Of a DNA stretch of 64,000 nt, positions 17,749 to 62,413 are shown piece after piece; position 1 is the stretch's first letter; each line of letters begins with the position of its first letter. The position numbers and the translations under genes are program-made. The stretch spans positions 248,001 through 312,000 of the IMG/VR virus record IMGVR_UViG_3300033997_000243; one strand, written 5' to 3'. A model generated the notes under the pieces. It was not told the DNA's origin and made no database searches. It was given only the letters and a program-made list of their open reading frames with translations.

Positions 17749-17807
17749 ATTATACCAAAATAAGGTATTGAAATAAACCCCTGATTTTTGACACACTTGG
17801 ATCAGTT
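17749..17807 (-). promoter_or_regulatory. class I promoter module (AACTGATCCAAGTGTGTCAAAAA-N30-TATAAT)
   Basis: Conserved repeat, TGGTATAAT extended -10, upstream of gyrA. Confidence 0.85.
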
Positions 17808-18643: not shown

Positions 18644-20626
18644 TTAATCGTTGGAACTTAACCCCAACAATTGCCGTCTGGCAGAGGCATCTTCACCGAC
18701 AACTGATCTGTAAAACGCAAGATCTTCTTGAACTTTACCGTATTCAATTTGAATCAACTTTCTGTTGTTAATATCAAATGCTATGGCTTCAAGTAAATCT
18801 GCATCTGTCTCTCCCCAACCTTTTGCACGGAACACACTTCCCTTCGGAGCATTTTTTGGTAACTTAGCTAAACATTCTTCCATTGTGTTTCCGCTGTAAT
18901 GCACACCATTAACGAGTGCGTTATACAATTGAGCGTCAACAACAAACAAACGACCTTCTTTAATAAAGTCCGGCATAAGTTTATAGAAAAATGCGGTGAT
19001 AAGTACGTTAATGTGAGATCCATCAGCATCAGCATCAGCAAGCAACATTGCAACAGCAACTCGCAGATTCTTTGTACTGAATGTAGGATTATCAGCTTTA
19101 ACATCCAAACTTTTTATGTCAACTCCCAAACTGTTCAGCATATCTTGAATGCGGTCATTTGAAAGTAAGGCACTTAGACTGACGTTCAATGCGTTTGGAA
19201 TTTTACCGCCAAGTTTTAAAACTTCCTGATTAAAACCACGAGCATTTTTGGCAGTACCACCAGCCGAATCGCCTTCGACAAAATACAGCTCACGCTCATG
19301 CGGTTTACAATCTGGAGCTTCATAAAGTTTTATTGGCAGCTTACTTCCACCTTTTTTAACTTCGCTCATGCCTTTCATTGTTTTAGCAAGATCTTCACGG
19401 GAAGCCGCAACATCACTTGCGCGTTTTATAATCTGCTTGGCTAATGTTTTGTTCTTTGCAAAAAAATCGGTTAATGGTTGAGTCAGTAAATCACAAACTT
19501 CGTTATCGATTTTAGATACCAGTTTATCTTTTACCTGACCACTAAATTGAGCGCTGTTCATTTTCCAGTTGATAATAGCAACTGCGCCAACATAAAGATC
19601 TTCTGGCTTAAACTTACCTGCTTTTTTGGGCAGATAGTTTTTCAAAGCTTTTGACATGGCCGCACGGAAACCATTTACATGCGTACCATGATCTATTGTT
19701 GGACTACTATTTACATAACTTCTGAACAGATCACTGTCATAGTGATTAGACCATTGAATAGCAACTTTCAGGCTTGAGCCATCGAACTCGAATGGCTTAC
19801 CCAAAGGCTCTAAATCATGATCAGAAATTATTGAACTGACTACAGCACCCAAACCTTTATCATTGTAGAAAACCTGTTCTTTGTTTGTTTCAAGGTTTAG
19901 GAAACCAATATAAAGCTTGCTATTCATGGTACTCATGAACTTTAAATAATCAGCAAACTTTTGTTCTTCCAAAACAGCTTGGGTATATGTTTTAAGTTTT
20001 GAGGTACGACTAGCATCAACGCTTATCACGCTTTGATCTGGAACCAAGCGAATGATAGTGCCAAGTCGCTTAAACTTTTTCTTGAGAGGTAAAAGATAAC
20101 CAAACTTTTTCTTGAGGAAAGTGTCTGGAACCTTTTTAACCGGACTGGTTTCTTTTCCGCATGAAAAACTTTGGTAGTACCACTGATCTTCACGACAAGT
20201 CCAGACCTCAAGTTCTTTTGATAAAGCATTGACCGCAGAAATACCAACACCGTGCGTACCACCTGAAGTCTGATAAGCTTTTACATCAAATTTTCCGCCA
20301 GCATGAAGTTCAGTAAGAATTACTGTTAATGCGCTTACTTTTTTACCTTCAACTGTTTTCATTCCAACAGGAATACCTTGAGCGCAGTCGGCAAAAACGT
20401 ATTCACTTGTTTTGTTATTAAAGGCTACATAGATTGCGTTGTTGCGTCCAGCTTCGTATTCATCGCGGCTGTTTTCAACAGCTTCTTTGCCCATGCGATA
20501 CATCATTGAATCGCCAAGCTCACCCATGTACATACCAGCGTTTAATCTAACACCAGCTAAACCTTTGTGAACCTGAATACTATCTTCATCATAAGTATTT
20601 GCAGATTTTGCTTTTGCTTTAGCCAT
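18644..20626 (-). CDS. gyrB: type IIA topoisomerase subunit B (GyrB/ParE-like)
   Basis: EAVENSRDE, LHAGGKF, GGTHGVGISAVNALS, VEGDSAGG, DADADGSHI, KGWGE. Confidence 0.95.
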   Translation of the reverse strand: MAKAKAKSANTYDEDSIQVHKGLAGVRLNAGMYMGELGDSMMYRMGKEAVENSRDEYEAGRNNAIYVAFNNKTSEYVFADCAQGIPVGMKTVEGKKVSALTVILTELHAGGKFDVKAYQTSGGTHGVGISAVNALSKELEVWTCREDQWYYQSFSCGKETSPVKKVPDTFLKKKFGYLLPLKKKFKRLGTIIRLVPDQSVISVDASRTSKLKTYTQAVLEEQKFADYLKFMSTMNSKLYIGFLNLETNKEQVFYNDKGLGAVVSSIISDHDLEPLGKPFEFDGSSLKVAIQWSNHYDSDLFRSYVNSSPTIDHGTHVNGFRAAMSKALKNYLPKKAGKFKPEDLYVGAVAIINWKMNSAQFSGQVKDKLVSKIDNEVCDLLTQPLTDFFAKNKTLAKQIIKRASDVAASREDLAKTMKGMSEVKKGGSKLPIKLYEAPDCKPHERELYFVEGDSAGGTAKNARGFNQEVLKLGGKIPNALNVSLSALLSNDRIQDMLNSLGVDIKSLDVKADNPTFSTKNLRVAVAMLLADADADGSHINVLITAFFYKLMPDFIKEGRLFVVDAQLYNALVNGVHYSGNTMEECLAKLPKNAPKGSVFRAKGWGETDADLLEAIAFDINNRKLIQIEYGKVQEDLAFYRSVVGEDASARRQLLGLSSND

Positions 20627-20638
20627 TGGGATCTTTCC

Positions 20639-21016
20639 TTAAGGCGTATTGTTATTTGTATTGAAATAACGAGACTCCAACACTTGAATTATTTTTGAAG
20701 TCAGATCTGGATCAGCATCTGGTAATCTTCCAGAAGAAATAAGGTTAAGAACTTTTACATAAGCATTAACCAATTTCAGATCAGAAGAATCTAACTTGAC
20801 TGGTATCTGAGAAAAATTTTCGTCAAGAACGGTGGCGACAATTTCAATAGGCGCTGTGATTGAGTTACCTGTAGCTGTTATCAGGAAAGTATAACCATCC
20901 AAAATAAAAGCTCGGAAAACATCTTGACGGAAAACATCAACCTTAGCCTCAAACTTTTCAAACCACGAAGTTCCTTGATTCTGCAAAGAAGTCAAGCGCT
21001 TTTTAATGCTCGGCAT
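20639..21016 (-). CDS. hypothetical protein
   Basis: 125 aa ORF. Confidence 0.75.
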   Translation of the reverse strand: MPSIKKRLTSLQNQGTSWFEKFEAKVDVFRQDVFRAFILDGYTFLITATGNSITAPIEIVATVLDENFSQIPVKLDSSDLKLVNAYVKVLNLISSGRLPDADPDLTSKIIQVLESRYFNTNNNTP

Positions 21017-21431
21017 TTAAAGTTATCCCCAAACATTTTCGGAAATATTCGTTAATTCCATCAATCTGAATAGATAAAATCTTTTCTTCGCTGAGATTAT
21101 AATGTTTCCCTAGCAAGGAAAGATTTGCATTAACAGCATCAAGAACCATAGAGGTTTCTATCAGACTAACTTTTAGAATTTCCAAAGAGGCTTTGGCACA
21201 AGATACTGAACCTTCCCAAATTGCAATATCTTCTGGATCTAGATTGTCCTTGTTTTTAGTAAGGATTCTATTTCCTTTTGCAACTAAGTTTGTTTGTTCA
21301 GTTTTTTGTTGCTCTAGTTCAAGTAAGTTGAGGCGAAGCGAAGTGCGGTAAGAAACCATGTAAGCATAAAGCTCAACAGGATCTTTTATGTGAAGCAGAT
21401 TATTGGTTACATGAGCCAAACTCGTGTTCAT
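21003..21431 (-). CDS. coiled-coil hypothetical protein
   Basis: 142 aa ORF. Confidence 0.75.
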   Translation of the reverse strand: MNTSLAHVTNNLLHIKDPVELYAYMVSYRTSLRLNLLELEQQKTEQTNLVAKGNRILTKNKDNLDPEDIAIWEGSVSCAKASLEILKVSLIETSMVLDAVNANLSLLGKHYNLSEEKILSIQIDGINEYFRKCLGITLNAEH

Positions 21432-21463
21432 TTCTCAATTCCATTCGCTAGAGAACTTTTACG

Positions 21464-21488
21464 AAAAAAGCCGCAAGAAGCGGCTTTT
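21464..21488 (-). terminator. intrinsic terminator
   Basis: AAAAGCCGC/GCGGCTTTT stem with U-tract. Confidence 0.8.
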
Positions 21489-21510
21489 GTTTGTTAACGA
21501 CTAAAATTTA

Positions 21511-21978
21511 TTATTCAAAATCGAAGTCGTTATTTTTCTTTTTTGTAGAAGGCTTTTTGTCAGCTTTCTTGTCTGACTTGGCCGGAGCTTTTTTGTCAGC
21601 AGACTTTTTATCAGCTGGCTTTTTGTCAACTTTCTTGTCTGACTTGGCCGGAGCTTTTTTGTCAGCAGACTTTTTATCAGCTTTCTTATCCGCTTTGGCC
21701 GGAGCTTTTTTGTCAGCTTTTTTGTCAGCTTTCTTATCCGCTTTGGCCGGAGCTTTCTTATCGGCTACCGGAGCTTTTTTGTCAGCTTTGGCAGGAGCTT
21801 TTGCGGCAGGAGCTGGATTACCTGCTAAAGCTTCGGCTTGCTGTTTTGTAGCGGCAGCAACTGCTTCTGCTTGTTCAGCGGCTTTAACTAAAGCTTCTGC
21901 TTGTTTGCGTAAAGCAGCGGCTTGCTTTGTAGAAGCAGTTGCACTTTTGTTCAGTGCGGAAATAGCTTGTTTACTCAT
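21511..21978 (-). CDS. histone H1/AlgP-like Lys-Ala-Pro repeat protein
   Basis: Ala-rich helix, then tandem PAKADKK/KSADKK repeats, ends NNDFDFE. Confidence 0.8.
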   Translation of the reverse strand: MSKQAISALNKSATASTKQAAALRKQAEALVKAAEQAEAVAAATKQQAEALAGNPAPAAKAPAKADKKAPVADKKAPAKADKKADKKADKKAPAKADKKADKKSADKKAPAKSDKKVDKKPADKKSADKKAPAKSDKKADKKPSTKKKNNDFDFE

Positions 21979-22009
21979 TTTTCAATTTCTCTTATTGCGA
22001 ATTAAAGGA

Positions 22010-22033
22010 AAGCGATGCAATACACATCGCTTT
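22010..22033 (-). terminator. intrinsic terminator candidate
   Basis: AAGCGATG/CATCGCTT stem. Confidence 0.55.
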
Positions 22034-22066
22034 AAATTTTAAAGAAGGTTAGTTAGAGGTCAGGGA

Positions 22067-22783
22067 TTAATCTTCTTCCCACTCTTCCTCTTCTTCCTCT
22101 TCTTCCTCTTCTTCCTCTTCCTCTTCTTCGTCAGAGGAATAGTTTTCTTCCAGCCACTCACGCAGAGTATCTTCGTTCTTCAGCGCCTTCTTAGGCGGCT
22201 CAAGATCGTTTTCTTTTGCGAAAGCCTTCATTTCTTTTAAATCCATTTCTTCAAAGTCTGGTTCTTCAGACTCTTCTTCCTCTTCTTCCTCTTCTTCGTC
22301 AGAGGAATAGTTTTCTTCCAACCACTCGCGCAGGTCATCTTCGTCTTTCAGAACTTTGGCAGGAACTTCCAGATCATTTTCTTTCACAAACTTTTTCAGT
22401 GCTTTGTGATCCATGTCCTCGAAGTCAGGAGAATCAGATTCTTCTTCCTCTTCTTCCTCTTCCTCTTCGGAATACTGCTCAGCTAAAAACTCGCGCAGGT
22501 CATCTTCATCTTTGATCTTTTTAGGGATCTCGATTTCGTTGTCTTTAGCAAACTTTTTCAGCTGCTTCAGATTCATTTCTTCAAAGTCTGGTTCATCAGA
22601 CTCTTCTTCCTCTTCGACTTCTTCATCCTTTTTGGATTTTTTGCCTTTGGAGGATTTACCGGCAGGAGCGCCTACAGCGGCAACAACGTCATCAGCTTCG
22701 ATAACACCTTCTTCAACACAAACTGTCAGCAATTCCAGTAACGCAGAAGCAACTGTTTTTCCGGCGGTCTTTTTCTTTGACAT
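22067..22783 (-). CDS. poly-Glu protein with three tandem HeH/Rho-N-like modules
   Basis: 3x PDFE(E/D)M.LK.LK.F.K.N.LE.P.K..K.ED.LRE(F/W)L separated by poly-E. Confidence 0.85.
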   Translation of the reverse strand: MSKKKTAGKTVASALLELLTVCVEEGVIEADDVVAAVGAPAGKSSKGKKSKKDEEVEEEEESDEPDFEEMNLKQLKKFAKDNEIEIPKKIKDEDDLREFLAEQYSEEEEEEEEEESDSPDFEDMDHKALKKFVKENDLEVPAKVLKDEDDLREWLEENYSSDEEEEEEEEESEEPDFEEMDLKEMKAFAKENDLEPPKKALKNEDTLREWLEENYSSDEEEEEEEEEEEEEEEEWEED

Positions 22784-22845
22784 GATATTTTCCCAATGTT
22801 CTACTGTTATAAAAAATTGTTTATACCATTTAGGTATACTAAAGA

Positions 22846-22853
22846 ATTTACAG
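22846..22853 (-). promoter_or_regulatory. class II candidate promoter motif CTGTAAAT
   Basis: Intergenic, upstream of start 22783. Confidence 0.5.
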
Positions 22854-22895
22854 TATTCCCAAAGCAGACTAAACTAAGGGAATACTTGAAAAGAA

Positions 22896-23417
22896 TTACT
22901 CGGCCAGTTCGGTCTGCATTTCAAAGCCGTCAGTATTTGACGTATTAAAAACAGTAACGTCACCAGTGTCCAAATTTGTGATAACATTGGCAGAACCGCG
23001 AGTTTCAACATTGGCACGTTTGATTTCACGAACAACTTCTTGTGACATCACGGTGATTTGAGCGCGTTCACCTACAGCACCAGTGTACATGATTACATCT
23101 TTCGCTGGAAAGATTGAAACTGTTTGCTTGGAAGAACGAGGTTTTGTGTGTGAGAAAACAAAAGATTCACCTTCGATTTTCAGCAAATAACCTTGCAGGT
23201 GTTGGGCAGTGCGTTTCGCAACAATACGAACACGTAATTCCATTTTAGGGTTGTGTTTGCGTAAAGAAATTTTGGAAAGTTTGCTTTCAAACTTATCAAG
23301 CATCGAAGGCTGGCCAGCTTTCTTAACTTTTGTAGCAGGAGCTTTGGCAGGTACTTTACCGGCAGCTTTTACAGGGGCTTTGCCTTTGGTTAAAGGCAGT
23401 TTCTTTTGGTTTGACAT
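22896..23417 (-). CDS. Lys-rich N-terminus plus possible Sm/LSm-like barrel
   Basis: LRVRIV...HLQGYLLKIEGESFVF...VSIFP..DVIMY strand pattern. Confidence 0.7.
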   Translation of the reverse strand: MSNQKKLPLTKGKAPVKAAGKVPAKAPATKVKKAGQPSMLDKFESKLSKISLRKHNPKMELRVRIVAKRTAQHLQGYLLKIEGESFVFSHTKPRSSKQTVSIFPAKDVIMYTGAVGERAQITVMSQEVVREIKRANVETRGSANVITNLDTGDVTVFNTSNTDGFEMQTELAE

Positions 23418-23514
23418 AGCTATAAATTTCCTTTGCGATTTTAGTCAAAAGCGACAGTTATTACATTATCATCGGCAGGTCAGAATTCTAAAATTCCTCC
23501 CGACCTGCCTATGT

Positions 23515-23522
23515 ATTTACAG
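23515..23522 (-). promoter_or_regulatory. class II candidate promoter CTGTAAATA followed by 5' leader hairpin (23474-23509)
   Basis: AAAACTGTAAATA, then GGCAGGTC/GACCTGCC stem. Confidence 0.6.
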
Positions 23523-23540
23523 TTTTAGCAGACCAGCAGC

Positions 23541-25691
23541 TTACTCAATGACAATCATTGAGTTTGCAGACCACGGCAACAGGTAAGAAATTGAATCAAA
23601 ATCAGATAACAGAGTGTGAACAATGTCGGTTTCGACTTCTGACTCAGTTTCTTCTTCTGAATCAATTTCTTCTTCTGTTTCTTCAACTTCTTCGCTTTCG
23701 TACTCTTCATCCAATTCACCATCGAATTCAAATTCAGAGTCCTGCATTTCAGCGGCCTGTTCTGCTTTTTCACGAACATATTCAACTAACTGTTCGCGGC
23801 TATAGTAGCCTGTTTTGTTAAACAGATCAACAACAGCACGAGATTTTAACAGCAGATCTAAATCGGCTGCAAAAGTAACCATGATTTCAATCGACTCTTC
23901 TGTCGCTTCATCAGCAATTGCTTGAGCAGATTTTTTTAGTGCCGTCAGATTTCCGCGCAACTTTTCTGAATCACGGCTACGGCCCAACATTGGGACGTTC
24001 AGAGATACGAAAAAGTTGTACACGATTTCATTTTCAGTATCACCGACTGAAGGTTGAACATTGATAGAAGCTAAATCGCTTAAATCAATACCTTCTGGTA
24101 ATACGTTGTCATCGGTTAAACCGTAGACCAAAGCTTTTGCAACTTTTTGCAGGTTCTCACAAATACCGTAAACGGTTTGATGAACAGCAATTGTTGGGCC
24201 GCAGTAAACGCGCTGTTTCATGTTAAACTCTGCAACCATTTGCGATAATGATTGCATTGGATCTACAAACCAGCCCATATTTTTGTCATCGGTTTCACGA
24301 CGGCGTAACGGATGATTGGCACACATTGCATTTTCACCAATGTAAATTGCGGCCAGTTCTTCCTGATCGATTTCACGAGTTTGCTGTGTGCCAGCCGATA
24401 AAACCAGAATAATGCGAGAAGAAGTTGTAAGTTCAAAGTGCGGAACTTCTGAACCTAAATAATCTACTTCTTCTAAGTGACGAATCACTTCGGCATTCAA
24501 AGCTTCAGCTTCAGCTTCAGCTTGCATTTCTGCTTCGATTTCGGCATCCATTTCAGCCAGTTGTTCTTCGGTGAATTCGATCTGAACACCATCTTCTTCA
24601 TCTTCATCAGAAACATAGTTTTCAGGATCGTCGCGTTCAACTTCTTCGACTTCTTCTTCATGAGTTTCAAAGTCGTCAGTTTCGTCAGAAGTTTCTGATT
24701 CATCTTCGGCTTCTACTTCAGCCAAAGCTTTGTTTTCAGCAACGGCCAGAACGTCAGAATACTGGCCGCGTAATTCTTCACGAATTTCTGAAGTACCTAA
24801 GTCAGAAATTTCTGAAAGCTGATCAGCTGTTAAGCTAATGTGCTGTTCAAAATGAGAAAGCAAGGCTTTGCGATCCATAGAGTCCAGAACTTCCAGAAAT
24901 TTATCTTCGTCACCGTTGGTAGCATGTTCCAGAAGTTCATCAAAATCTGAATCATCAACTTTTTCAGTTCCGGTGATTTCCTGCATAACCTGCGCTGTTG
25001 AAACAGTTTCGTTTTCTGCAAAATCAAATTCGCTCGACTCTTCGGCTTCAAAATCGCTGGCAGTCGGCACAGCATCAACAACTACAGTTGTACTTTCATC
25101 TGAATCTTCAGCATAAATTTTGTTGATTGCAGCAATCAACATTTGACGAGCTTCGTCTGAAGTTTCAGCGTTTTCTGTAGCTTCATCGGCATAACCGCCT
25201 AAGTGAATAAGCAGATCGGCCAGACCATCATCAGAAAGTTGTTCAACTTTTGAAGGGTCTGAGTAATCAACCATCGGATCGAATTCAGCAAAATCAGCTT
25301 CATCAAAAGTAGAGTTTGCCGAATTTCCGCCAGATAAAGCGGCCAACAACGGATCAATTTCGGCACGAAGTTTGTTGCGAGATTCAGCACCGTTTTTAAT
25401 ACCTTTCAACAAAGCTTCCGCATTACCACCTAAATGATTCAACAGATCTTTGTGGCCTTTCAAACTTAACTCTTCCAGATTCACCGGATTGGTGTAATCA
25501 ACAGATGGATTGAATTGCTTTTTCTCTGGAGCAGGAATTTTAACTTCGTTAACGTACATTGCGGTTTCTCCAACATTTGTTTTTGGTTCAGCCACAACAG
25601 GCGCTGAGTTCGGCACTACTTTAGATTGTTGCATAGAAGCAGCGGCAGCTGCACTAACTTTAGGCAACAACTTATGTTTTGGTTTTAGCAT
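23541..25691 (-). CDS. large acidic protein with internal repeat
   Basis: 716 aa; repeat FNPSVDYTNP..LEELS..G..DLL.HLGG / FDPMVDYSDP..VEQLS..G..DLL.HLGG; Glu/Asp tracts. Confidence 0.85.
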   Translation of the reverse strand: MLKPKHKLLPKVSAAAAASMQQSKVVPNSAPVVAEPKTNVGETAMYVNEVKIPAPEKKQFNPSVDYTNPVNLEELSLKGHKDLLNHLGGNAEALLKGIKNGAESRNKLRAEIDPLLAALSGGNSANSTFDEADFAEFDPMVDYSDPSKVEQLSDDGLADLLIHLGGYADEATENAETSDEARQMLIAAINKIYAEDSDESTTVVVDAVPTASDFEAEESSEFDFAENETVSTAQVMQEITGTEKVDDSDFDELLEHATNGDEDKFLEVLDSMDRKALLSHFEQHISLTADQLSEISDLGTSEIREELRGQYSDVLAVAENKALAEVEAEDESETSDETDDFETHEEEVEEVERDDPENYVSDEDEEDGVQIEFTEEQLAEMDAEIEAEMQAEAEAEALNAEVIRHLEEVDYLGSEVPHFELTTSSRIILVLSAGTQQTREIDQEELAAIYIGENAMCANHPLRRRETDDKNMGWFVDPMQSLSQMVAEFNMKQRVYCGPTIAVHQTVYGICENLQKVAKALVYGLTDDNVLPEGIDLSDLASINVQPSVGDTENEIVYNFFVSLNVPMLGRSRDSEKLRGNLTALKKSAQAIADEATEESIEIMVTFAADLDLLLKSRAVVDLFNKTGYYSREQLVEYVREKAEQAAEMQDSEFEFDGELDEEYESEEVEETEEEIDSEEETESEVETDIVHTLLSDFDSISYLLPWSANSMIVIE

Positions 25692-25699
25692 AATGTCCT

Positions 25700-26977
25700 C
25701 TAGGCTTTTTGCCAGTACATTTTAGGTTTTGAAATTCTCACAACTGGCTGAGTTCCATTTTTGCCCTTTCTGCTTTCGAGACTGGAACTCTGAGCTGTTT
25801 TTGATTCACAACAAACAAAACCCAAACTTTTTAGTTTGCTCATAATCTGAGTGTGTTTAACGCTCGGTGGAGTGCATGTGATCTCATTTGAATTTGAGCA
25901 AAGAAATAAATCTAATGCTTTAAAACAAAATAAATTCACTGGGTCATTTGCTTTCGCAACTTCACGAGCTTTTTTACGCAATTCACGATTGGCTTCTCGC
26001 TTTTCTTCAAAAGCATCAATCAACTTTTTAGCGGCTTCAGCCAAATTAATCTGGCGTCGTGTTGGCCGTTTTATTTGATCGAACTCTGAAAGATAAAGCA
26101 CTGCCTTTGCTTTCTTTTCACGATACTTATCTAAGAATCCAATATATGGACTTTTTCGATCCGCACGTTCACGATAGATCTCAGCTAAACGATCAACATC
26201 GTGAATAATCCATTCATGAATCACCGAAGCATAATCCATTTCAGGATCGTATTCGTTGCGCTCAAGTTTGCCGTAAACAACATAATACTGCTCACTTTTA
26301 CCAAAAGCACCGTCAGGTAAATTCGGTGGAACAATGTTTGAAGCTTGATACGTAAAATCAACAAACTTTTCTTTTTGTTTGGAGTCTACGTAATTCAGAA
26401 AAGCAGAAACTAACTTAGTCTGACCAGCAACTTTTTTATAAACGCAGTACATATCATAAGCGTCAGTTTGAACACGAACAAAACTTTTACCTAAACAAGA
26501 TTTTGCTGGCCCATCTACTATTTTGAACTGAGAAATACTCTTCATCAATTTTAAATAGTGATCAGAAGGAACATAAGTCACACTGCAATCTAAAGCGGAG
26601 CGCATGTGTTCTTTTAAAACTGATCTTAGATCTTTTTTCGTTAATACGGAATCAGGCAACTGAACCGCATCATAACCAGCAACTTCATTCCAAAGCATTT
26701 TATTTATATTGCTTTGGGGCAAAGCTAAACCGCATTCGTAAAGTAATGCAACTTTTTCACAAGCAACATAACTACCACGACAAATTTGATTGTACAAATT
26801 AATAAGGTGCGAACGTGATATACGCAACATGAAATGATGTTCGCTGCTTGCGCTACCTCGCGCTACCCAACGATCACCAGACAAAGGCACAGCAGTAGTA
26901 ATCAAACAATTTGTTAAAGCGTTTGGCGCTTGTTCATGCAAAATGCTTGAATAGATCAACTTTGTGTGCTGATTCAT
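25700..26977 (-). CDS. hypothetical protein
   Basis: 425 aa ORF. Confidence 0.8.
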   Translation of the reverse strand: MNQHTKLIYSSILHEQAPNALTNCLITTAVPLSGDRWVARGSASSEHHFMLRISRSHLINLYNQICRGSYVACEKVALLYECGLALPQSNINKMLWNEVAGYDAVQLPDSVLTKKDLRSVLKEHMRSALDCSVTYVPSDHYLKLMKSISQFKIVDGPAKSCLGKSFVRVQTDAYDMYCVYKKVAGQTKLVSAFLNYVDSKQKEKFVDFTYQASNIVPPNLPDGAFGKSEQYYVVYGKLERNEYDPEMDYASVIHEWIIHDVDRLAEIYRERADRKSPYIGFLDKYREKKAKAVLYLSEFDQIKRPTRRQINLAEAAKKLIDAFEEKREANRELRKKAREVAKANDPVNLFCFKALDLFLCSNSNEITCTPPSVKHTQIMSKLKSLGFVCCESKTAQSSSLESRKGKNGTQPVVRISKPKMYWQKA

Positions 26978-26992
26978 AAATTTTCCAGATTA

Positions 26993-27014
26993 GGCGGTAG
27001 GAATTCCTACCGCC
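26993..27014. terminator. perfect 22-bp palindrome / terminator candidate
   Basis: GGCGGTAGGAATTCCTACCGCC. Confidence 0.55.
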
Positions 27015-27069
27015 AATTTACTTGGTTAAAGATTCTTCCTCTTCGTCATCTTCCTCTTAAGCTAGAGGA

Positions 27070-28536
27070 TTATTCGCTCTCGAACTCGAAGTCCTCTTCG
27101 CCAGTAGTTTCTTCAGCGTCAACCAACTTTTCAATCAGTAAAGCTTTCAACGCTTTGATTTTACGGAAGTGACGGATGTTCTGCGAAACTTTACCAACTT
27201 TATCGCTGTATTGTTTTGCAATTTCCAGTAAAGAATCGAAGTCGCGGATTTCGTTGATTTCTTCGGCAGTAATGCCTTCCTCAACTTCTTCTTCCTCCTC
27301 TTCCTCTTCTTCAGTTTCTTCAAAGAACAGGCTGACCACGTATTCGATCAGTTCTTCTTTATCCAAACCTTCGATGTAATCAACAGTAGCTTCGTAATCT
27401 TCGCTACCTTCTTCACCTAAATCAACAGCACCAAAGATGAAAGTGCGGATTTCTGATTCAGAGTAATCGGCCAGTGCGTCAGCGGCTTCTTCAGCAGATT
27501 CACAGCCTTCTAAAAGATTTGAATCATCTTCAGATTCTTCTTCCTCTTCTTCGGCTTCGTCCAGCTCGTCCAGTTCATCAACTTCTTCTTCCTCCAGTTC
27601 ATCAACTTCTGTTTCCTCTTCTTCAGAGAAAGGAACAAAGTCTAAACTCTCAAAGTCTTTTGAACCAACATCTTTTGGTTCACCGTTTTCATCTTCCAGA
27701 ATCAAACGAACTGGATCACGTTGCATACCAGCAAAGTAGTAAGTTTTACCATCTTCGTCAACTAAGCGTGAACCGATGACAAACTCTTCCATTTCTTCTT
27801 CGTCCAGTTGCAGTGCGGCAAACACACGTTGAGCAACTTTTGAATTCGCGGCAACCTGACTTTCCCACAGACCTTCTTCAACCAGAGATAAAGTTTCTTC
27901 GCTGAAGTTAAATTCTACAGCTTCTTCCTCTTCTTCCAGTTCTTCCAGTTCTTCTTCCAACTCTTCCTCTTCTTCAGGAATGTCAAAAGTTAAATCTGAC
28001 ATGCAAAGAATAACGGTCGGATCGCCACCTTCTTCTTCGATTTGTGCGCCAGTGTTTACGCTAACGAAATTGTCAAAGCGTTTTGGCAAATGTTCACGCA
28101 GAATTTCTTCAACCGCTGAACGAATTTCACCTGACTGTTCAGTAACATTTTCGATAGTAATGGCATCAACTTCTTCCAGTTCTTCCACAACTTTGGTGGC
28201 AGACTTACGTGCAGGTTTTGTTTCAGCAACTTTTTTGCCAGCTGGTTTTTTGTCGGCTTTGGCCGGAGCTTTTGCTGGAGCTTTTTTGTCGGCTTTGGCC
28301 GGAGCTTTTTTAACTTTTGGCAAAGTCACATAACCAGAACCAACTTTTGCACCGTCAACAGGCTGATCGATTTCTTCAAACTTTTGACCATCACGTACAA
28401 CACAATTTGCGGCAACGCCTTTACGACGACCTTGCAGTTTGTAACCAGTTTTAGTTGTCTCTGTGATAGTGTCACGCGAACCATCTAACAGAGTAATTTT
28501 TTTACCGACTAAAGTTTCATTAGGAGTTACTTTCAT
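27070..28536 (-). CDS. bipartite basic/acidic protein (PAKADKK repeats, poly-E, ends EDFEFESE)
   Basis: Start moved to ATG 28536 (MKVTP) with AAGGA RBS, downstream of CTGTAAAT motif. Confidence 0.85.
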   Translation of the reverse strand: MKVTPNETLVGKKITLLDGSRDTITETTKTGYKLQGRRKGVAANCVVRDGQKFEEIDQPVDGAKVGSGYVTLPKVKKAPAKADKKAPAKAPAKADKKPAGKKVAETKPARKSATKVVEELEEVDAITIENVTEQSGEIRSAVEEILREHLPKRFDNFVSVNTGAQIEEEGGDPTVILCMSDLTFDIPEEEEELEEELEELEEEEEAVEFNFSEETLSLVEEGLWESQVAANSKVAQRVFAALQLDEEEMEEFVIGSRLVDEDGKTYYFAGMQRDPVRLILEDENGEPKDVGSKDFESLDFVPFSEEEETEVDELEEEEVDELDELDEAEEEEEESEDDSNLLEGCESAEEAADALADYSESEIRTFIFGAVDLGEEGSEDYEATVDYIEGLDKEELIEYVVSLFFEETEEEEEEEEEVEEGITAEEINEIRDFDSLLEIAKQYSDKVGKVSQNIRHFRKIKALKALLIEKLVDAEETTGEEDFEFESE

Positions 28537-28568
28537 TTCAACTTTCCTTACATTGGATTCAAATAAAT

Positions 28569-28576
28569 ATTTACAG
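28569..28576 (-). promoter_or_regulatory. class II candidate promoter motif CTGTAAAT
   Basis: 33 nt upstream of ATG 28536. Confidence 0.55.
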
Positions 28577-28625
28577 AACGGTCGGAGCAGGATTGCCCCA
28601 CACATTAATCAAACAAACTTTTTTG

Positions 28626-29231
28626 TTAGAAACTGATTACAGTATCTGACTCAACGCGAACATCTTTGCCTTTGGCATTTTTACAGATTAAGCGGCAAAC
28701 GCCACCACGCACTGAAACACCGTAAACCAGAAGTTCCTGATCATCTACGAATATCGACTTGTTGAACATTGATAATGCAACGCCGAATTCTTTAGCTTTG
28801 GCTAAATTCGCCTTGAACGAATCTTTAGTTTCGCTCAAACCTGCTTCACGATAAACTTTTCGTAACTCTGTGGATGGAGCAACGAACTGCGCTACCGCTT
28901 GCTTTTTACTTGCTTTGCCAGTCACTGTTTTATTTACAGTTTTGGCAGTACCAGAACCTTTCAGATCAACCAACTTTTCTTTTATCAAAGTTGAAAGTTG
29001 ATCTACGGCAGAAAGAACACGAGTTAATGATTTTGCATCTAAGTTGTCGATGTTGTTTACTTCGATGCCAGCACTTTTTAAAGTTGACCTTACCGCAACA
29101 GGAATACTTGCTTTTGGTTTTTTAACCGGAGTATCTTTTGCAGGAAGTTTAGCACTTGGTTTAACTTTACCAGAAGGTTTTACACTTACTGGAGCTTTGT
29201 TTTCACCTTTCTTTGGAAACTTTTTAATCAT
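28626..29231 (-). CDS. basic Lys-rich protein
   Basis: Start moved to ATG 29231 (MIKKFPKK) with GAGG RBS. Confidence 0.8.
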   Translation of the reverse strand: MIKKFPKKGENKAPVSVKPSGKVKPSAKLPAKDTPVKKPKASIPVAVRSTLKSAGIEVNNIDNLDAKSLTRVLSAVDQLSTLIKEKLVDLKGSGTAKTVNKTVTGKASKKQAVAQFVAPSTELRKVYREAGLSETKDSFKANLAKAKEFGVALSMFNKSIFVDDQELLVYGVSVRGGVCRLICKNAKGKDVRVESDTVISF

Positions 29232-29301
29232 GGTCGAGATCCTCAAATGATTGATAAACTTTTTACTTTGATTGGGCGATATTGCCCTAACCAATGTACA
29301 C

Positions 29302-29350
29302 ATTATACTAAAAGTGGCCGCTCATAACAACCACTATTTTTGACACACTT
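29302..29350 (-). promoter_or_regulatory. class I promoter module with embedded terminator hairpin
   Basis: GTGTGTCAAAAA-N29-TATAAT; TTGTTA-17-TATAAT; AGUGGUUGUU/AGCGGCCACU-UUU. Confidence 0.88.
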
Positions 29351-29413
29351 TGTTTAGTAACAAACTTTTTATCGGGAACGAAACTTCAGACAAACTTTCT
29401 CTGTTGTTTCGAT
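29311..29413 (-). ncRNA. candidate ~100 nt sRNA between tandem promoter modules
   Basis: No plausible ORF between promoter 29420 and terminator hairpin 29311-29336; internal stems GAAAC/GUUUC, CAGA/UCUG. Confidence 0.4.
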
Positions 29414-29419
29414 GGTGTA

Positions 29420-29477
29420 ATTATATCAAAAGTGGCCGCTCATAACAACCACTATTTTTGACACACCTCGATCAGTT
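29420..29477 (-). promoter_or_regulatory. class I promoter module (tandem duplicate)
   Basis: Near-identical copy of 29302-29350. Confidence 0.88.
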
Positions 29478-29479
29478 GA

Positions 29480-29731
29480 CTATCGTTGAGCTTTACGTGC
29501 CTTCTTTTGTACAGCACGTTTTGCTCTACGTAAACTTTTTGGAATCAACTTTTTCGTTGCACGATAGCGAGTGGCTGTACCTTCATCGTGCCAAGAATCT
29601 TGCTGCGGCTCACTGTAATCATCTTTTAAACTTTTTACAATGCGCTTTACTTCAGCATCAATATTATCTTCGGCTATCGCAATCTGATTAAATTGAGAAG
29701 CGACGATTGCACCAACTAATTCTTTTCTCAT
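29480..29731 (-). CDS. small basic hypothetical protein
   Basis: 83 aa, AAGGA RBS. Confidence 0.75.
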   Translation of the reverse strand: MRKELVGAIVASQFNQIAIAEDNIDAEVKRIVKSLKDDYSEPQQDSWHDEGTATRYRATKKLIPKSLRRAKRAVQKKARKAQR

Positions 29732-29795
29732 ATAAATATCCTTTTGCTAAAGCTTGCGTAAAAGGCGACTTAATAAAATCACCTTTGCCAAAACT

Positions 29796-30572
29796 TTATT
29801 CTATATCAATTCCGTTTATAACAGCATCCAGATATTCTTGCATAGAAGATTGACTGGTATAAATACCGTGATCAATGCTTGCACCTTTATCCGGCAGATT
29901 TTCACGAGCGTAACGCTGCAAAGCTGGCAAACTCATTTCCTGAAAATCGACAAAGTTTTCTACAGGTAAATCAGCATCATCTTCTTCCATATCTTCTTCA
30001 TCTTCACGAAGAATACGAACGCTGTAACTGCAATTTGTAAAAAGTTGGCCGTCAACCATTATTGAATTTGGGGTTATAGGTTGAATTTTGAATTCGTCGG
30101 CAAATGAGAATTCAACCCTGTACGGAACGTCAACAACAAAAACGGAAAACTTATCTTTCAAAGAATTAATATGCAGCCCAAGTTTAGGTAACTGAATAAA
30201 CTTTTCAACACGTTTTACCATGCCGTAGTTAAACAGCAAACGTGCATCAGTAACCACACCAAGATCTTCACGAATTTCATAACCTGAATTCATAAAGTCA
30301 GGCGCACGACCTTTTGCAGCTGTTTGTGCTAAAAATTCTACATAAGCATCAACACATTCGCTGGAAACCAAAAGTTTGCATTCCTGAGTAGTGTCGATAA
30401 CAACATGAACAGGTGCTTTGTTTGCGTAGATTGCGTTTCGAGTCAAATACTCAACAACAGCTTTTTGATATTTTGTTGAACGCATTTGTTCAGGAATGGT
30501 TAAACCTTTTTCTTCCGCGAAAGTTAAAAGGTCTGACATACTAGCGTTGTTTAACTCTTGTATACTTTTCAT
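29796..30572 (-). CDS. hypothetical protein with terminal HeH/Rho-N-like modules
   Basis: LNNASMSDLLTFAEEKGLTIP and FQEMSLPALQRYAREN. Confidence 0.8.
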   Translation of the reverse strand: MKSIQELNNASMSDLLTFAEEKGLTIPEQMRSTKYQKAVVEYLTRNAIYANKAPVHVVIDTTQECKLLVSSECVDAYVEFLAQTAAKGRAPDFMNSGYEIREDLGVVTDARLLFNYGMVKRVEKFIQLPKLGLHINSLKDKFSVFVVDVPYRVEFSFADEFKIQPITPNSIMVDGQLFTNCSYSVRILREDEEDMEEDDADLPVENFVDFQEMSLPALQRYARENLPDKGASIDHGIYTSQSSMQEYLDAVINGIDIE

Positions 30573-30633: not shown

Positions 30634-30688
30634 ATTTTACCAAAAAGCTTAGTGTCGATCAATCACTGTTTTTGACACACTTGGATCA
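30634..30688 (-). promoter_or_regulatory. class I promoter module overlapping 3' end of upstream CDS
   Basis: GATCCAAGTGTGTCAAAAA-N29-TAAAAT; TTGATC-17-TAAAAT. Confidence 0.82.
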
Positions 30689-31349: not shown

Positions 31350-31397
31350 ATTATATAAAAACAGACTATAATAGGCAACACTCATTTTTGACACACC
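31350..31397 (-). promoter_or_regulatory. class I promoter module
   Basis: GTGTGTCAAAAA-N29-TATAAT; TTGCCT-17-TATAAT. Confidence 0.85.
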
Positions 31398-35879: not shown

Positions 35880-36450
35880 TACACTTTACCTTAAGATTTA
35901 CAGTTACTAAATCCAGTTTGACCGCCAAAACAATTAGACCTAAACGGCCAAACATTTCATTCATCAAATTCATCAATGTCGGCCAAGCATCAAAATCGCT
36001 GGCAGTTCTGCGAAAGTTGATCTCAAACTTTTCACGAGTAAAAGAAGGATCATCTTGCTCGTTTCTAGCCAAAAGCAAAAGAGTGTAAAATTCATCCAAA
36101 GCTTTTTCTCTGTGTTGCAGCCACGTTGTAGATTTTTCATCACTCAACATCAAGCTTTCCGCAAAGTCCAAAGACATAAAGCGATGCAGCGCGTTAAAAC
36201 GACGACACATAGATCGGCTGAGCATTTCTTCCGACTGACACATTTTATTTTTTGTCCACAAAGTAATACGAGTAGATTTAAGTTCGGCAGCCACTGTATC
36301 GATGTGTTTCGCTTTGGTCGCAAACTTTTTATCCAGTTTTGAATAAAAGGGCAAACAAGCTACGACAATTCGGAAAAGCAATTCAATAAAAAGAGCTATT
36401 AATAATCCGACTGTGTAGCGCAAAATAAAGTTGATTACATTCTTAACCAT
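35866..36450 (-). CDS. membrane-anchored hypothetical protein
   Basis: N-terminal hydrophobic segment, GAGG RBS. Confidence 0.75.
   Translation of the reverse strand: MVKNVINFILRYTVGLLIALFIELLFRIVVACLPFYSKLDKKFATKAKHIDTVAAELKSTRITLWTKNKMCQSEEMLSRSMCRRFNALHRFMSLDFAESLMLSDEKSTTWLQHREKALDEFYTLLLLARNEQDDPSFTREKFEINFRRTASDFDAWPTLMNLMNEMFGRLGLIVLAVKLDLVTVNLKVKCNDKE
35896..35903 (-). promoter_or_regulatory. class II candidate promoter motif CTGTAAAT
   Basis: 17 nt upstream of start 35879. Confidence 0.4.
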
Positions 36451-38003: not shown

Positions 38004-38054
38004 ATTATACCAAAAGCGGCCATTCATAACAACCGCTGTTTTTGACACACTTGG
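38004..38054 (-). promoter_or_regulatory. class I promoter module with embedded terminator hairpin
   Basis: TTGTTA-17-TATAAT; AGCGGUUGUU/AAUGGCCGCU-UUU, compensatory change relative to the 29302 copy. Confidence 0.88.
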
Positions 38055-54906: not shown

Positions 54907-55000
<94 letters not shown>

Positions 55001-62392: not shown

Positions 62393-62413
62393 TTTTACAA
62401 AAGCAGAGGCAAT

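Follow-up and report, generated by a model that had tools for sequence, protein, structure and literature searches.

Why would a 320-kb jumbo phage carry, next to its topoisomerase genes, a run of strongly basic and strongly acidic, low-complexity proteins? An earlier note, made from the sequence alone, had proposed that this cluster encodes an undescribed electrostatic scaffold that condenses or shields phage DNA or forms a shell-less replication compartment, with DNA mimicry by the acidic members as an alternative. To answer this question, we analyzed the locus within a window of 64,000 nucleotides (positions 248,001 to 312,000 of IMG/VR record IMGVR_UViG_3300033997_000243) and compared it with related phages.

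A cluster of oppositely charged proteins upstream of topo II

We first asked whether the cluster is real. All six proteins listed by the earlier note were present on the minus strand, with the composition that it had described, and its observation therefore holds (Table 1). Clustering is non-random: of the 12 proteins in the 319.5-kb genome with an absolute net charge per residue of at least 0.10 and a length of at least 150 aa, 5 lie in 8 consecutive genes (permutation p = 1.2e-4). The four most highly charged proteins fall on the disordered side of the Uversky charge-hydropathy boundary. Several details of the note required correction. Homologue alignments put the start of the 511-aa ORF at Met24, and the 225-aa ORF most likely starts at Met25, because its upstream ATG lies inside a promoter -10 box. 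The 425-aa protein located within the cluster has an ordinary charge, and plus-strand ORFs such as the one listed in Table 1 are mirror artefacts of the low-complexity genes.

Table 1 Features of the charged-protein locus (positions in the window; disordered, helical and folded parts are predictions).
Position	Strand	Feature	Length, net charge	Description
29302..29466	-	Two tandem class-1 phage promoters		GTGTGTCAAAAAT, about 22 nt with a hairpin, then TTTTGnTATAAT; upstream of the 201-aa gene
28626..29231	-	Lys-rich protein, peripheral member of the module	201 aa from Met25 (ATG 29231); ORF as listed to 29303, 225 aa, +24	Disordered basic N-terminal half, folded C-terminal part
28569..28576	-	Class-2 promoter motif, variant form		TTCTGTAAATA, 40 nt upstream of ATG 28536
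27070..28536	-	Bipartite protein (511-like)	488 aa from Met24 (ATG 28536); ORF as listed 27070-28605, 511 aa, -91	Conserved N-terminal domain of about 70 aa (phrog_33433), PAKADKK basic stretch, long acidic tracts with embedded helical segments, C-terminal acidic-aromatic tail (DFEFESE)
28241..28309		PAKADKK-coding DNA repeat in the 511-like gene		Shared with 21560..21802, 85-94% over 33 nt
26993..27014	-	Hairpin between the 511-like and 425-like genes		9-bp GC-rich stem, no T run; intergenic fold -29.4 kcal/mol, z = -4.2
25700..26977	-	425-aa protein	425 aa, ordinary charge	One Sel1/TPR-like repeat near the N-terminus, charged helical segment
23541..25691	-	Large acidic protein	716 aa, -119	Repeated helical modules at the N-terminus, acidic tracts, non-acidic domain at about residues 400-650, conserved hydrophobic C-terminal peptide
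23515..23523	-	Class-2 promoter motif		AAAACTGTAAATA, upstream of the 173-aa gene, followed by a conserved GATAATGTAATAACTGTC element
22896..23417	-	Basic-tailed protein (173-like)	173 aa, +14	Disordered Lys/Ala/Pro tail (residues 1-37), short helix, all-beta domain (residues 60-173); phrog_22271
22846..22854	-	Class-2 promoter motif		ATACTGTAAATT, 70 nt upstream of the poly-Glu gene
22067..22783	-	Poly-Glu protein	238 aa (74 Glu), -66	Conserved N-terminal helical domain of about 45 aa, short basic patch, three tandem repeats of 56 aa (168 nt), each a helical module of roughly 45 aa plus a poly-Glu run; single Trp 4 residues from the end
22009..22033	-	Hairpin between the poly-Glu and H1-like genes		10-bp stem, short T-rich stretch, z = -2.7; probably a partial terminator or attenuator
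21511..21978	-	H1/AlgP-like protein	155 aa (43 Lys), +23	N-terminal heptad-repeat helix, K/A/P/D repeats, C-terminal DFDFE tail
21560..21802		PAKADKK-coding DNA repeat in the 155-aa gene		Shared with 28241..28309
21491..22042	+	ORF, mirror artefact		
21466..21488	-	Strong intrinsic terminator ending the poly-Glu/H1-like operon		9-bp stem plus a T run
20639..21431	-	Two small neutral proteins	142 and 125 aa	Always between the H1-like gene and topo II
18644..20626	-	DNA topoisomerase II large subunit		Downstream neighbour of the module

The cluster is a conserved and constrained module

To test whether the cluster is conserved, a condition whose failure had been named beforehand as a refutation, we examined its counterparts in related phages. 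The order 511-like, 425-like, large acidic, 173-like, poly-acidic, H1-like, then two small genes is kept in Phage NCTB, Yersinia fHe-Yen9-02, Erwinia Y3, Dickeya JA11 and Pseudomonas PaBG, while the one Lu11 locus examined holds large acidic, 173-like, poly-acidic and H1-like. These phages belong to the ‘Lupandier’ jumbo phages. The order is also kept in seven metagenomic contigs (here L024, L027, L028 and L032-L035). The cluster is thus conserved, and it appears to be undescribed. Orthologues of the 425-aa protein are found in NCTB, fHe-Yen9-02, Y3, JA11, PaBG and the metagenomic contigs, and the two small proteins have positional counterparts in all relatives. Positional counterparts of the large acidic protein, of 289-1062 aa, exist in all relatives, but sequence links across clades are weak (hhalign 50-57% through NCTB). 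The 173-like family has 63 clusters at 50% identity among 1.84 billion representatives. By contrast, the Lys-rich 201-aa protein is peripheral: positional homologues of 207-210 aa with the same C-terminal motif sit upstream of the 511-like gene in L027 and L035, but none was recognised in the enterobacterial or Pseudomonas phages.

The genes are under constraint. Compared with an 85%-identical sister phage, dN/dS is 0.08-0.13 for all module genes, and among strain SNPs, 7 of 7 in the 173-aa gene and 22 of 26 in the 716-aa gene fall at third codon positions, with repeat-length changes in frame. Terminal motifs are also conserved: the F-x(1-2)-F acidic tail is present in 10 of 11 H1-like orthologues, an aromatic residue lies near the end in 11 of 12 poly-acidic proteins, and heptad periodicity of the H1-like helix reaches p < 0.05 in 8 of 11. 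We considered whether these could be unrelated, fast-evolving ORFs without joint function, whose low-complexity tracts arose by replication slippage and sit together by chance or by local duplication. The variation of repeat length between strains, the weak similarity of the large acidic protein between clades and the absence of family assignments would be compatible with this reading. However, the clustering statistics, the shared modules described below, the selection data and the conservation of gene order among phages whose topo II large subunits are only 43-50% identical to that of this phage, and in several metagenomic lineages, largely refute it, and we consider it very unlikely.

The proteins are built from shared modules. 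The Yersinia and Y3 orthologues of the 511-like protein end in the same helical module as the poly-acidic protein, the basic repeat is shared at the DNA level between the H1-like and 511-like genes, and in L026 a single protein carries the basic tail, the beta domain and a poly-acidic tail. Such repeated modules give the multivalency that a scaffold would need.

Core genes share a promoter motif with DNA-metabolism genes

The earlier note stated that most genes of the cluster have their own promoter and terminator, which is only half right. Recognisable phage promoters precede the 225-, 511-, 173- and 238-aa genes, whereas the 425-, 716- and 155-aa genes have none and are read from upstream. 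Hairpins follow four genes, and only two of them have a T run. The poly-Glu and H1-like genes form one operon with an internal hairpin; in relatives, a hairpin of unrelated sequence occupies the same position. Likewise, a hairpin of different sequence sits between the 511-like and 425-like genes in relatives, and terminators equivalent to that ending the operon occur in L032, L027 and L028. The note also inferred high expression, but the public runs that hold this phage show flat, DNA-like coverage, and expression level thus remains an inference.

Two promoter classes were distinguished. The class-1 12-mer, of the sigma-70 type, occurs 8 times in the window against 0.08 expected, and precedes the peripheral 201-aa gene. 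The class-2 motif AACTGTAAAT occurs 10 times in the window against 1.16 expected, and is otherwise found upstream of the clamp loader, DNA polymerase, SSB, sigma factor, exonuclease, primase, SbcC-like and helicase genes. Three module genes carry it, the 173-, 238- and, as a variant, the 511-aa genes. This placement is conserved in relatives: the motif lies upstream of the poly-Glu orthologue in L032, L033, L034, L035 and L027, and CTGTAAAT lies 38-57 nt upstream of the orthologue of the 511-aa gene in L033, L035 and L027. This class is assigned from the functions of its target genes and not from transcript data, and a variant of the motif also precedes the portal gene. Downstream of the module lie the topo II large and medium subunits, a further topoisomerase, a DnaB-like replicative helicase, terminase and portal. 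In PaBG, the module sits next to the sigma factor, SSB and UvsX genes instead.

The proximity to terminase and portal, within 13-17 kb in the same gene array, raises the question of whether the proteins are virion-associated, the basic members being packaged with the genome as condensing counter-ions or ejected with it, and the acidic members being prohead core or scaffold components removed or cleaved during maturation. Oppositely charged sets are typical of prohead cores, as in the T4 prohead core with its acidic scaffold and basic internal proteins, the portal gene carries the motif variant, and PaBG virion proteins undergo proteolytic processing (PMC7412058). However, none of the PaBG counterparts (gp124-131) is among the 14 identified virion bands (PMC7412058), although this proteome covers only Coomassie-visible bands. 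Moreover, the PaBG module lies between replication and recombination genes rather than head genes, the promoter motif is otherwise found at eight DNA-metabolism genes, and the genome has another pair of large basic and acidic proteins elsewhere (genome 69213-74469). A role in the virion therefore seems unlikely.

The module proteins match no known family

We next sought to assign the proteins to families. No protein reaches any Pfam, NCBIfam or PDB family threshold. The term H1/AlgP-like used by the earlier note describes composition only, as no linker-histone, Hc1, phasin or other family model is matched. The bacterial repeat proteins AlgP, PhaF and chlamydial Hc1, and the Hc1-type (PF07432) protein reported in ‘moraphages’ (PMC12619734), share K/A/P-rich tandem repeats with the phage protein, which, like PhaF, has an N-terminal helical or oligomerising part followed by a basic repeat tail. 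By contrast, its repeat unit contains Asp (PAKADKK), making it a well-mixed polyampholyte (kappa 0.09), and it ends in a conserved FxF acidic tail and is always paired with a poly-acidic gene. AlgP, the closest compositional analogue, localises to polyphosphate granules (PMC9239181), and the KPAA-type disordered region of PhaF binds RNA and activates translation (PMC12818456), suggesting that the ligand of the phage proteins may not be DNA. They could instead bind mRNA, rRNA or polyphosphate, and tune translation or sequester polyphosphate during infection with the acidic proteins as regulators. The acidic tail with an aromatic residue also recalls the ribosomal stalk P-protein tail, but only through sub-threshold hits to Ribosomal_60s and archaeal P1. 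This reading is unlikely: there is no significant match to phasin, AlgP, PhaF or ribosomal families, the gene context and the promoter motif are shared with DNA enzymes rather than translation factors, and the phage SSB carries the same style of tail, which links the motif to DNA transactions.

Indeed, the phage SSB has a blocky basic/acidic tail with KFDEDEDD motifs. The tails recall the acidic C-terminal tips of single-stranded DNA-binding proteins (E. coli SSB DDDIPF; T7 gp2.5 and gp4 tails), which end in aromatic residue(s), recruit partners and compete with DNA for the protein’s own basic surface. Here, however, the tip sits on a disordered, presumably dsDNA-binding repeat protein, and also on acidic proteins.

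The helical module of roughly 45 aa has the pattern of two short helices with a Lys-rich connector found in HeH/SAP/Rho-N/LEM DNA-binding motifs. Its only hits are weak ones to Rho_N, Ish1, SAP and LEM models and to a PHROG annotated from the endonuclease VII C-terminus; all Pfam hits are below the gathering thresholds and there is no significant PDB hit. Unlike these motifs, the module is embedded in poly-acidic tracts, and it is absent from the PaBG and Lu11 orthologues. For the 173-aa protein, AlphaFold2 gave a mean pLDDT of 87, and 96-98 over the predicted beta domain, but Foldseek found no significant PDB match. No module protein matches a DNA-binding family. Finally, the profile of the 425-aa protein hits the Sel1-repeat protein 6onw at E = 1.4e-4.

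A possible polyelectrolyte system for replicating phage DNA

The earlier interpretation is partly supported by these data. Our best reading, which remains tentative (probability about 0.4), is that the cluster is a conserved polyelectrolyte module of the ‘Lupandier’ lineage, made in the infected cell alongside the DNA-replication and recombination proteins, and not a major virion component. In this view, the basic members, namely the H1-like protein, which would oligomerise through its N-terminal coiled coil, the basic-tailed beta-domain protein and the basic stretch of the bipartite protein, would bind nucleic acid, most likely the replicating phage DNA, non-specifically through their disordered K/A/P tails. 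The acidic members, that is, the poly-Glu protein, the acidic half of the bipartite protein and the 716-aa protein, would act as counter-ions or chaperones keeping the basic proteins soluble, exchangeable and removable, as prothymosin-alpha does for histone H1. Repeated helical modules and acidic-aromatic motifs (the FxF tails, also present in the phage SSB tail) would supply multivalent, specific contacts, possibly read by the Sel1-like 425-aa protein. The result would be a dynamic, shell-less DNA-protein phase that compacts and organises the replicating concatemer for the adjacent topoisomerases, helicase and packaging machinery. Our analysis establishes composition, conservation, selection, the shared promoter motif, operon structure and gene context; every step of this mechanism, including DNA binding, mutual binding, condensation or phase separation and any protection from nucleases, is inferred.

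The comparison with the eukaryotic histone H1/prothymosin-alpha pair supports physical plausibility. In both cases, a disordered Lys-rich protein is paired with a disordered poly-Glu/Asp partner, net charges are of comparable magnitude (+23 and -66 here, against +53 for H1 and -44 for ProT-alpha; PMC11592313), and the chaperone and coacervate logic would be the same. There is, however, no sequence or domain homology: the phage basic protein has a coiled coil and an acidic-aromatic tip instead of a winged-helix globular domain, the acidic partners carry folded modules, and the pair belongs to a module of six to eight genes.

By contrast, the module as a whole is strongly net-acidic, about -276 against +78, which fits decoy or sequestration roles as well as a chaperone role. 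The cluster could therefore be a host-takeover or counter-defence module, in which the poly-acidic proteins would be decoys or DNA mimics that soak up host DNA-binding proteins, such as the nucleoid proteins HU and H-NS, restriction or other nucleases, or RNA polymerase, with the basic proteins compacting or silencing the host nucleoid. Acidic phage proteins that mimic DNA or bind nucleoid proteins include T7 Ocr, T4 Arn and T7 gp5.5, which acts with H-NS. PaBG and Lu11 keep only a small N-terminal domain plus about 100 residues of pure Asp/Glu, suggesting that the charge itself is the active element, and the class-1 promoters of the peripheral 201-aa gene are compatible with early expression. 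However, the core genes carry the motif of replication genes rather than the class-1 motif. In addition, the known mimics are compact and folded, with fixed charge arrays, and are usually early, single and variable genes, whereas the proteins described here are low-complexity and match no Ocr or ArdA model. Their strict pairing and co-transcription with a basic partner, and the L026 fusion, point to a phage-internal partnership. Finally, anti-defence genes are usually variable between relatives, whereas this module keeps its order across hosts from Pseudomonas to Yersinia and, for NCTB, a putative cyanobacterial host (PMC7412058). Action on the host remains possible but is less likely than the main reading.

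Organisation of replicating DNA by a compartment, such as the chimallin-bounded phage nucleus, is a strategy used by other jumbo phages, and disordered, multivalent phage proteins are implicated in condensates (ChmC in Chimalliviridae, PMC11077065; SPO1 transcription condensates, PMC13401047). The module has no homology to ChmC or the SPO1 factors. No chimallin or PhuZ homologue was detected in the genome, in searches with single sequences that could miss a distant homologue, so any compartment would be shell-less. The phage uses sigma-70-like promoters and its own sigma factor, suggesting that it relies on the host RNA polymerase.

The charged cluster is real and belongs to a complete jumbo-phage genome

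The viral record that holds the window (bases 248001-312000) is 319,518 bp long and has direct terminal repeats, so it is a complete jumbo-phage genome. A nucleotide search of the cluster against 50,697 GenBank phage records returned no match, and no near-identical record to this phage was found among them. By topoisomerase II, its nearest annotated relatives, at 43-50% identity, are Phage NCTB, Dickeya JA11/JA29/AD1, Yersinia fHe-Yen9-02, Erwinia Y3-like phages, and Pseudomonas PaBG and Lu11, that is, the 'Lupandier group' of Evseev et al. (PMC7412058), which is subgroup 2.2 of Iyer et al. (PMC7824862). To test whether this is a nucleus-forming phage of the Chimalliviridae type, we searched the complete genome with phiKZ chimallin (gp54) and PhuZ. 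Nothing was found at E <= 1, although these were single-sequence searches that could miss a very distant homologue. The phage has sigma-70-like promoters and its own sigma factor, and it is therefore very unlikely to be a nucleus-forming phage.

The earlier note had described a cluster of oppositely charged, low-complexity proteins next to topo II. This observation held: every ORF that it named exists on the minus strand with the composition it described, and the clustering is statistically non-random. Genome-wide, 12 proteins of at least 150 aa have a |net charge per residue| >= 0.10, and five of them lie in eight consecutive genes (permutation p = 1.2e-4). The four most highly charged fall on the disordered side of the Uversky boundary. 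The poly-Glu gene contains three 168-nt tandem repeats, and the PAKADKK-coding repeat is shared at DNA level (85-94%) between the 155-aa (H1-like) and 511-aa genes. Two start codons need correcting, the 511-aa ORF starting at Met24 and the 225-aa ORF most likely at Met25 (hereafter the 201-aa protein). By contrast, the note's claim that most of the genes have their own promoter and terminator is only half right, as detailed below with the expression signals.

Coordinates of the features (window positions unless stated otherwise)
Position	Strand	Feature	Length	Net charge	Details
21511-21978	-	H1-like protein	155 aa	+23	K/A/P/D repeats
22067-22783	-	Poly-Glu protein	238 aa	-66	74 Glu
22896-23417	-	Basic-tailed protein	173 aa	+14	Lys-rich N-terminal tail
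23541-25691	-	Large acidic protein	716 aa	-119
23541-23620	-	C-terminus of the 716-aa protein			Hydrophobic peptide (DFDSISYLLPW...) after the last acidic tract, conserved in the window-clade orthologues (contigs L032, L033, L034); may be a docking or anchoring peptide
27070-28605	-	Bipartite protein	511 aa	-91	Basic stretch, then acidic tracts
28626-29303	-	Lys-rich protein	225 aa	+24
17785-17796, 29337-29348, 29455-29466, 30669-30680, 31385-31396, 38039-38050, 50053-50064, 51868-51879	-	Composite promoter-like element (class 1)			CCAAGTGTGTCAAAAAT, about 22 nt often forming a hairpin with a T run, then TTTTGnTATAAT
486-494, 1135-1143, 22846-22854, 23515-23523, 28932-28940, 35896-35904, 46175-46183, 56040-56048, 61329-61337, 62385-62393		Promoter-like motif (class 2)			AACTGTAAAT(C/A); found on both strands of the genome
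23465-23492		Conserved element (T)GATAATGTAATAaCTGTC			About 55 nt upstream of the 173-like gene, also at the equivalent positions in L032, L033, L034, L035 and L028; may be a second, sigma-70-type -10 promoter or an operator
13067-14152	-	Further topoisomerase gene (phrog_17701)			Downstream of the two topo II subunits; three topoisomerase genes within 8 kb of the module
10086-11453		DnaB-like helicase
6314-9265		Large terminase
3317-5248		Portal
60259-61290	-	Phage SSB
61331-62350		Phage sigma factor
54921-54995	-	tRNA-Gly			Single; anticodon TCC
21491-22042, 22413-22877, 27980-28333	+	Long ORFs opposite the low-complexity genes			Mirror artefacts (Phe/Leu/Ser-rich translations of the antisense repeats); a length-based gene caller would pick the wrong strand for the H1-like gene
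21400-27399		Segment compared with public sequencing runs (X1-X12)
Genome 13649-14389 (locus L013, outside the window)	+	Second AlgP/H1-like protein	246 aa	+58	About ten APAGKKP repeats; in the plus-strand block near the replication genes
Genome 69213-70931 (locus L018, outside the window)	+	K/A/P-rich coiled-coil protein	572 aa	+68	Forms an oppositely charged pair with the next entry
Genome 72112-74469 (locus L018, outside the window)	+	Acidic protein	785 aa	-185	Two CxxC...CxxC zinc-ribbon motifs; C-terminal domain matching phrog_20988
Locus L025, 62-286		PC4-like gene in a distant relative of the module			PC4-like (PF02229) single-stranded-DNA-binding protein gene just upstream; the 173-like protein there ends in an acidic-aromatic tail (EEFFDED)

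The genes are under selection and form a conserved module

To determine whether the genes are constrained, we compared them with those of a sister phage on a 329-kb metagenomic contig (L032). The dN/dS ratio is 0.098 for the H1-like gene, 0.105 for the poly-Glu gene, 0.098 for the 173-aa gene, 0.134 for the 716-aa gene and 0.082 for the 425-aa gene, against 0.039 for topo II. Public sequencing runs provided a second view. Near-identical phage DNA occurs in subsurface metagenomes and, as a variant about 1% divergent, in wastewater libraries labelled RNA-Seq. Coverage is flat and DNA-like even in the libraries labelled RNA, and these runs gave no expression information, but the differences of a strain variant in a wastewater run were usable: 7 of 7 positions in the 173-aa gene and 22 of 26 in the 716-aa gene are third codon positions, and the indel in the poly-Glu repeats is an in-frame 6-nt insertion. 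Assembler contigs break or mis-join at the charged repeats, with, for example, position 21802 joined to the repeat of the 511-aa gene.

The gene order 511-like, 425-like, large acidic protein, 173-like, poly-acidic protein, H1-like protein and two small neutral proteins recurs in fHe-Yen9-02, NCTB, Y3, JA11 and PaBG, and in the metagenomic contigs L024, L027 (261 kb), L028, L032, L033, L034 and L035. The one Lu11 locus examined holds the large acidic, 173-like, poly-acidic and H1-like genes. In most lineages topo II follows directly. By contrast, the module of PaBG sits beside the sigma factor, SSB and UvsX genes, 12-15 kb from topo II, and that of Lu11 likewise lies about 12 kb from topo II. 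A profile of the 173-like protein finds 63 clusters at 50% identity among 1.84 billion representatives, but nothing in the outgroup phage Motura. A search for related loci with the single 173-aa protein found only an identical copy, and a word-based homologue search with the H1-like protein was swamped by low-complexity candidates and gave no hit.

Several features tie the members to each other. In the distant contig L026, one protein carries a basic repeat tail, the 173-like beta domain and a poly-acidic tail ending in EDWEE. The helical module of roughly 45 aa of the poly-acidic proteins also ends the 511-like proteins of Y3 and fHe-Yen9-02, and the N-terminal domain of the 511-like proteins recurs in a second, basic protein of the enterobacterial phages (hhalign 96%). 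Terminal motifs are conserved as well: an F-x(1-2)-F acidic tail is present in 10 of 11 H1-like proteins, a single Trp or Phe lies 3-10 residues from the end in 11 of 12 poly-acidic proteins, and heptad periodicity in the H1-like N-terminus reaches p < 0.05 in 8 of 11. The phage SSB has the same style of tail, long and blocky, with alternating acidic and Lys-rich segments and two KFDEDEDD-type motifs, and the PaBG SSB has a similar one, raising the possibility that acidic-aromatic motifs are a common docking signal among the DNA-metabolism proteins of this phage. On the other hand, internal homology of the 173-like domain with the 511 N-terminal domain, and of the 201-aa protein with the 511-like or Y3_316-like proteins, was not supported. 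Taken together, these data show a lineage-wide, selected gene module that appears to be undescribed, and we regard the alternative that its members have no joint function as very unlikely.

The module shares a promoter motif with DNA-metabolism genes

Two promoter classes stand out. Class 1 is GTGTGTCAAAAAT, then about 22 nt (often a hairpin), then TTTTGnTATAAT. It occurs 8 times in the window against 0.08 expected, and 12-13 times in the genome, always on the minus strand. Two tandem copies precede the 201-aa gene. Its upstream box is too far from the -10 hexamer (about 32 nt) to be a -35 element, and it may be an activator site or a terminator-promoter cassette. Class 2 is AACTGTAAAT(C/A), with 10 copies against 1.16 expected, lying 25-105 nt upstream of start codons. 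Its annotated targets are the clamp loader, DNA polymerase, SSB, sigma factor, exonuclease, primase, SbcC-like nuclease and a helicase, plus the portal gene in a variant form. It is probably the middle-gene promoter of this phage lineage, perhaps read with the phage sigma factor.

Within the module, the 173-aa and poly-Glu genes carry class 2 and the 511-like gene carries the variant. CTGTAAAT is found upstream of these three genes in most of the related contigs, although the intergenic sequences have otherwise diverged. The 425- and 716-aa genes have no promoter and follow the 511-like gene after a positionally conserved hairpin. The H1-like gene has no promoter either. It follows the poly-Glu gene after a hairpin, and a strong terminator closes that operon. 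A consensus RNA fold of the poly-Glu/H1-like intergenic regions was precluded because the hairpins are not alignable, being conserved in position but not in sequence. Our reading, inferred from promoter sharing rather than from transcripts, is that the module belongs to the DNA-metabolism ('middle') regulon, and that the acidic partner is transcribed before the basic one and probably in excess of it.

The proteins match no curated family

We then asked whether the members belong to known families. None reaches a curated threshold in Pfam or NCBIfam. PHROGs offers only function-less families, plus a match of the helical module to a family annotated from the endonuclease VII C-terminus. For linker histone H1 and chlamydial Hc1 (PF00538, PF07432), there was no hit at E <= 0.1 for the window protein or at E <= 1 for seven orthologues, and NCBIfam gave none. 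The composition of the H1-like protein, 28% Lys, 28% Ala and 6% Pro in repeats of 4-7 residues, recalls the KPAA-type repeats of AlgP and PhaF, but its unit contains Asp and no phasin or AlgP model is matched. 'H1/AlgP-like' is therefore a statement about composition, not homology or family membership. An RNA- or polyphosphate-directed role, as for PhaF and AlgP (PMC12818456, PMC9239181), is a reading that we consider unlikely.

The helical module gives sub-threshold hits only to HeH-class models, the best being Rho_N at 18 bits against a cut-off of 24.9 and SAP at E = 0.0095 in 1 of 13 modules, with Ish1 and LEM weaker still. An alignment of the 13 modules shows the hydrophobic spacing and Lys-rich connector expected of a helix, extended connector, helix architecture of about 40 residues, as judged from sequence alone. 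For the 425-aa family, a profile of six orthologues hits the Sel1-repeat protein 6onw at E = 1.4e-4 and 6deh at E = 0.0076 over positions 57-124, pointing to one Sel1/TPR-like repeat, although the single sequence gave no Pfam hit. PDB profile searches with the 173-like family, the helical module, the 511 N-terminal domain and the poly-Glu N-terminal domain returned nothing significant, and the H1-like N-terminus hits only generic heptad-repeat coiled coils. ESM Atlas look-ups for the 425-, 173- and 716-aa proteins gave no usable hit.

The 173-aa protein was modelled by AlphaFold2 with a 52-sequence alignment, with a mean pLDDT of 87. Residues 1-37, the basic tail, are low-confidence, residues 39-48 form a predicted helix, and residues 60-173 form a predicted all-beta domain at pLDDT 96-98. 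Foldseek finds no significant PDB match for this model (best E = 0.029, TM <= 0.22).

With regard to the acidic members, a host-directed role as decoys or DNA mimics was considered. No Pfam hit to Ocr- or ArdA-type anti-restriction families was obtained for any acidic member, and the sequences are low-complexity rather than compact. This reading seems unlikely, albeit less so than the other alternatives.

A putative polyelectrolyte system that would organise phage DNA

Downstream of the module lie the topo II large and medium subunits, the further topoisomerase, the DnaB-like helicase, the large terminase and the portal. To assess a prohead-core or packaged-protein role, we examined the PaBG structural proteome, whose 14 Coomassie bands comprise gp76, 80, 81, 83, 94, 191, 202, 213-215, 240, 257, 261 and 263, and none of gp124-131, the module counterparts (PMC7412058). 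The sensitivity of this proteome is low and minor components are not excluded, but we consider a virion role unlikely. In the open literature searched, we found no virion proteome for Y3 and no paper that discusses these genes. The nearest report is a Pfam Hc1-type protein in unrelated aquatic 'moraphages' (PMC12619734).

The H1-like and poly-Glu proteins have large opposite net charges, both fall on the disordered side of the Uversky boundary, and their genes are adjacent and, from the promoter and terminator positions, co-transcribed, as required of a disordered polyelectrolyte pair of the H1 / prothymosin-alpha type (PMC10576128, PMC11592313), which serves as our physical model. The multivalency expected of a condensate scaffold is also present, with three tandem helical modules in the poly-Glu protein, the same module in 511-like proteins of relatives, basic repeats shared by three or four proteins, and a coiled coil in the H1-like protein. 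A complex prediction for the H1-like N-terminus (residues 1-60) with the poly-Glu N-terminus (residues 1-46) scored 0.01, which is evidence neither way, and it is not used here.

The best-supported reading, held only tentatively (probability about 0.4), is an intracellular polyelectrolyte system that organises nucleic acid, most likely replicating phage DNA. The basic members, namely the coiled-coil H1-like protein, the basic-tailed beta-domain protein and the basic stretch of the bipartite protein, would bind DNA through disordered tails. The poly-acidic members would serve as chaperones or counter-ions and, through repeated modules and acidic-aromatic motifs, as multivalent scaffolds, and the adjacent topoisomerases would act on the resulting compacted DNA. 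The sequence analysis establishes the charge composition, the conservation and selection of the module, its gene context and the shared promoter motif, while DNA binding, binding between the partners, phase separation and timing of expression are all inferred. The note's mechanistic idea, an electrostatic scaffold that condenses or shields phage DNA or forms a shell-less replication compartment, is plausible and partly supported by context, every biochemical step remaining hypothetical. The assembly may be a true condensate, although we consider this unlikely.

A more far-reaching possibility, which we consider unlikely, is that shell-less jumbo phages of the Lupandier lineage build their own chromatin-like phase. 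In this view, the coiled-coil H1-like protein and the basic-tailed beta-domain protein would coat the replicating genome, and dedicated poly-acidic chaperone/scaffold proteins, made from the same operons, would load, exchange and strip them, giving a coacervate-type replication and packaging compartment that works with the phage topoisomerases and may also exclude host nucleases. This would be a bacterial-virus analogue of the histone / histone-chaperone system, made of new protein families.

How jumbo phages without a chimallin nucleus organise and protect several hundred kilobases of replicating DNA is an open question, for which this module is a concrete, conserved and experimentally accessible candidate, since the same genes exist in culturable phages of Pseudomonas, Erwinia, Dickeya and Yersinia. 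If it works as proposed, it would be the first phage-encoded pairing of a histone-like protein with an acidic chaperone, and a natural, minimal system for studying complex coacervation with DNA in bacteria. Whatever the function, the analysis defines two promoter classes for this lineage and several new protein families, which include a confidently modelled beta domain with no significant PDB match, a conserved FxF acidic tail and a shared helical module.
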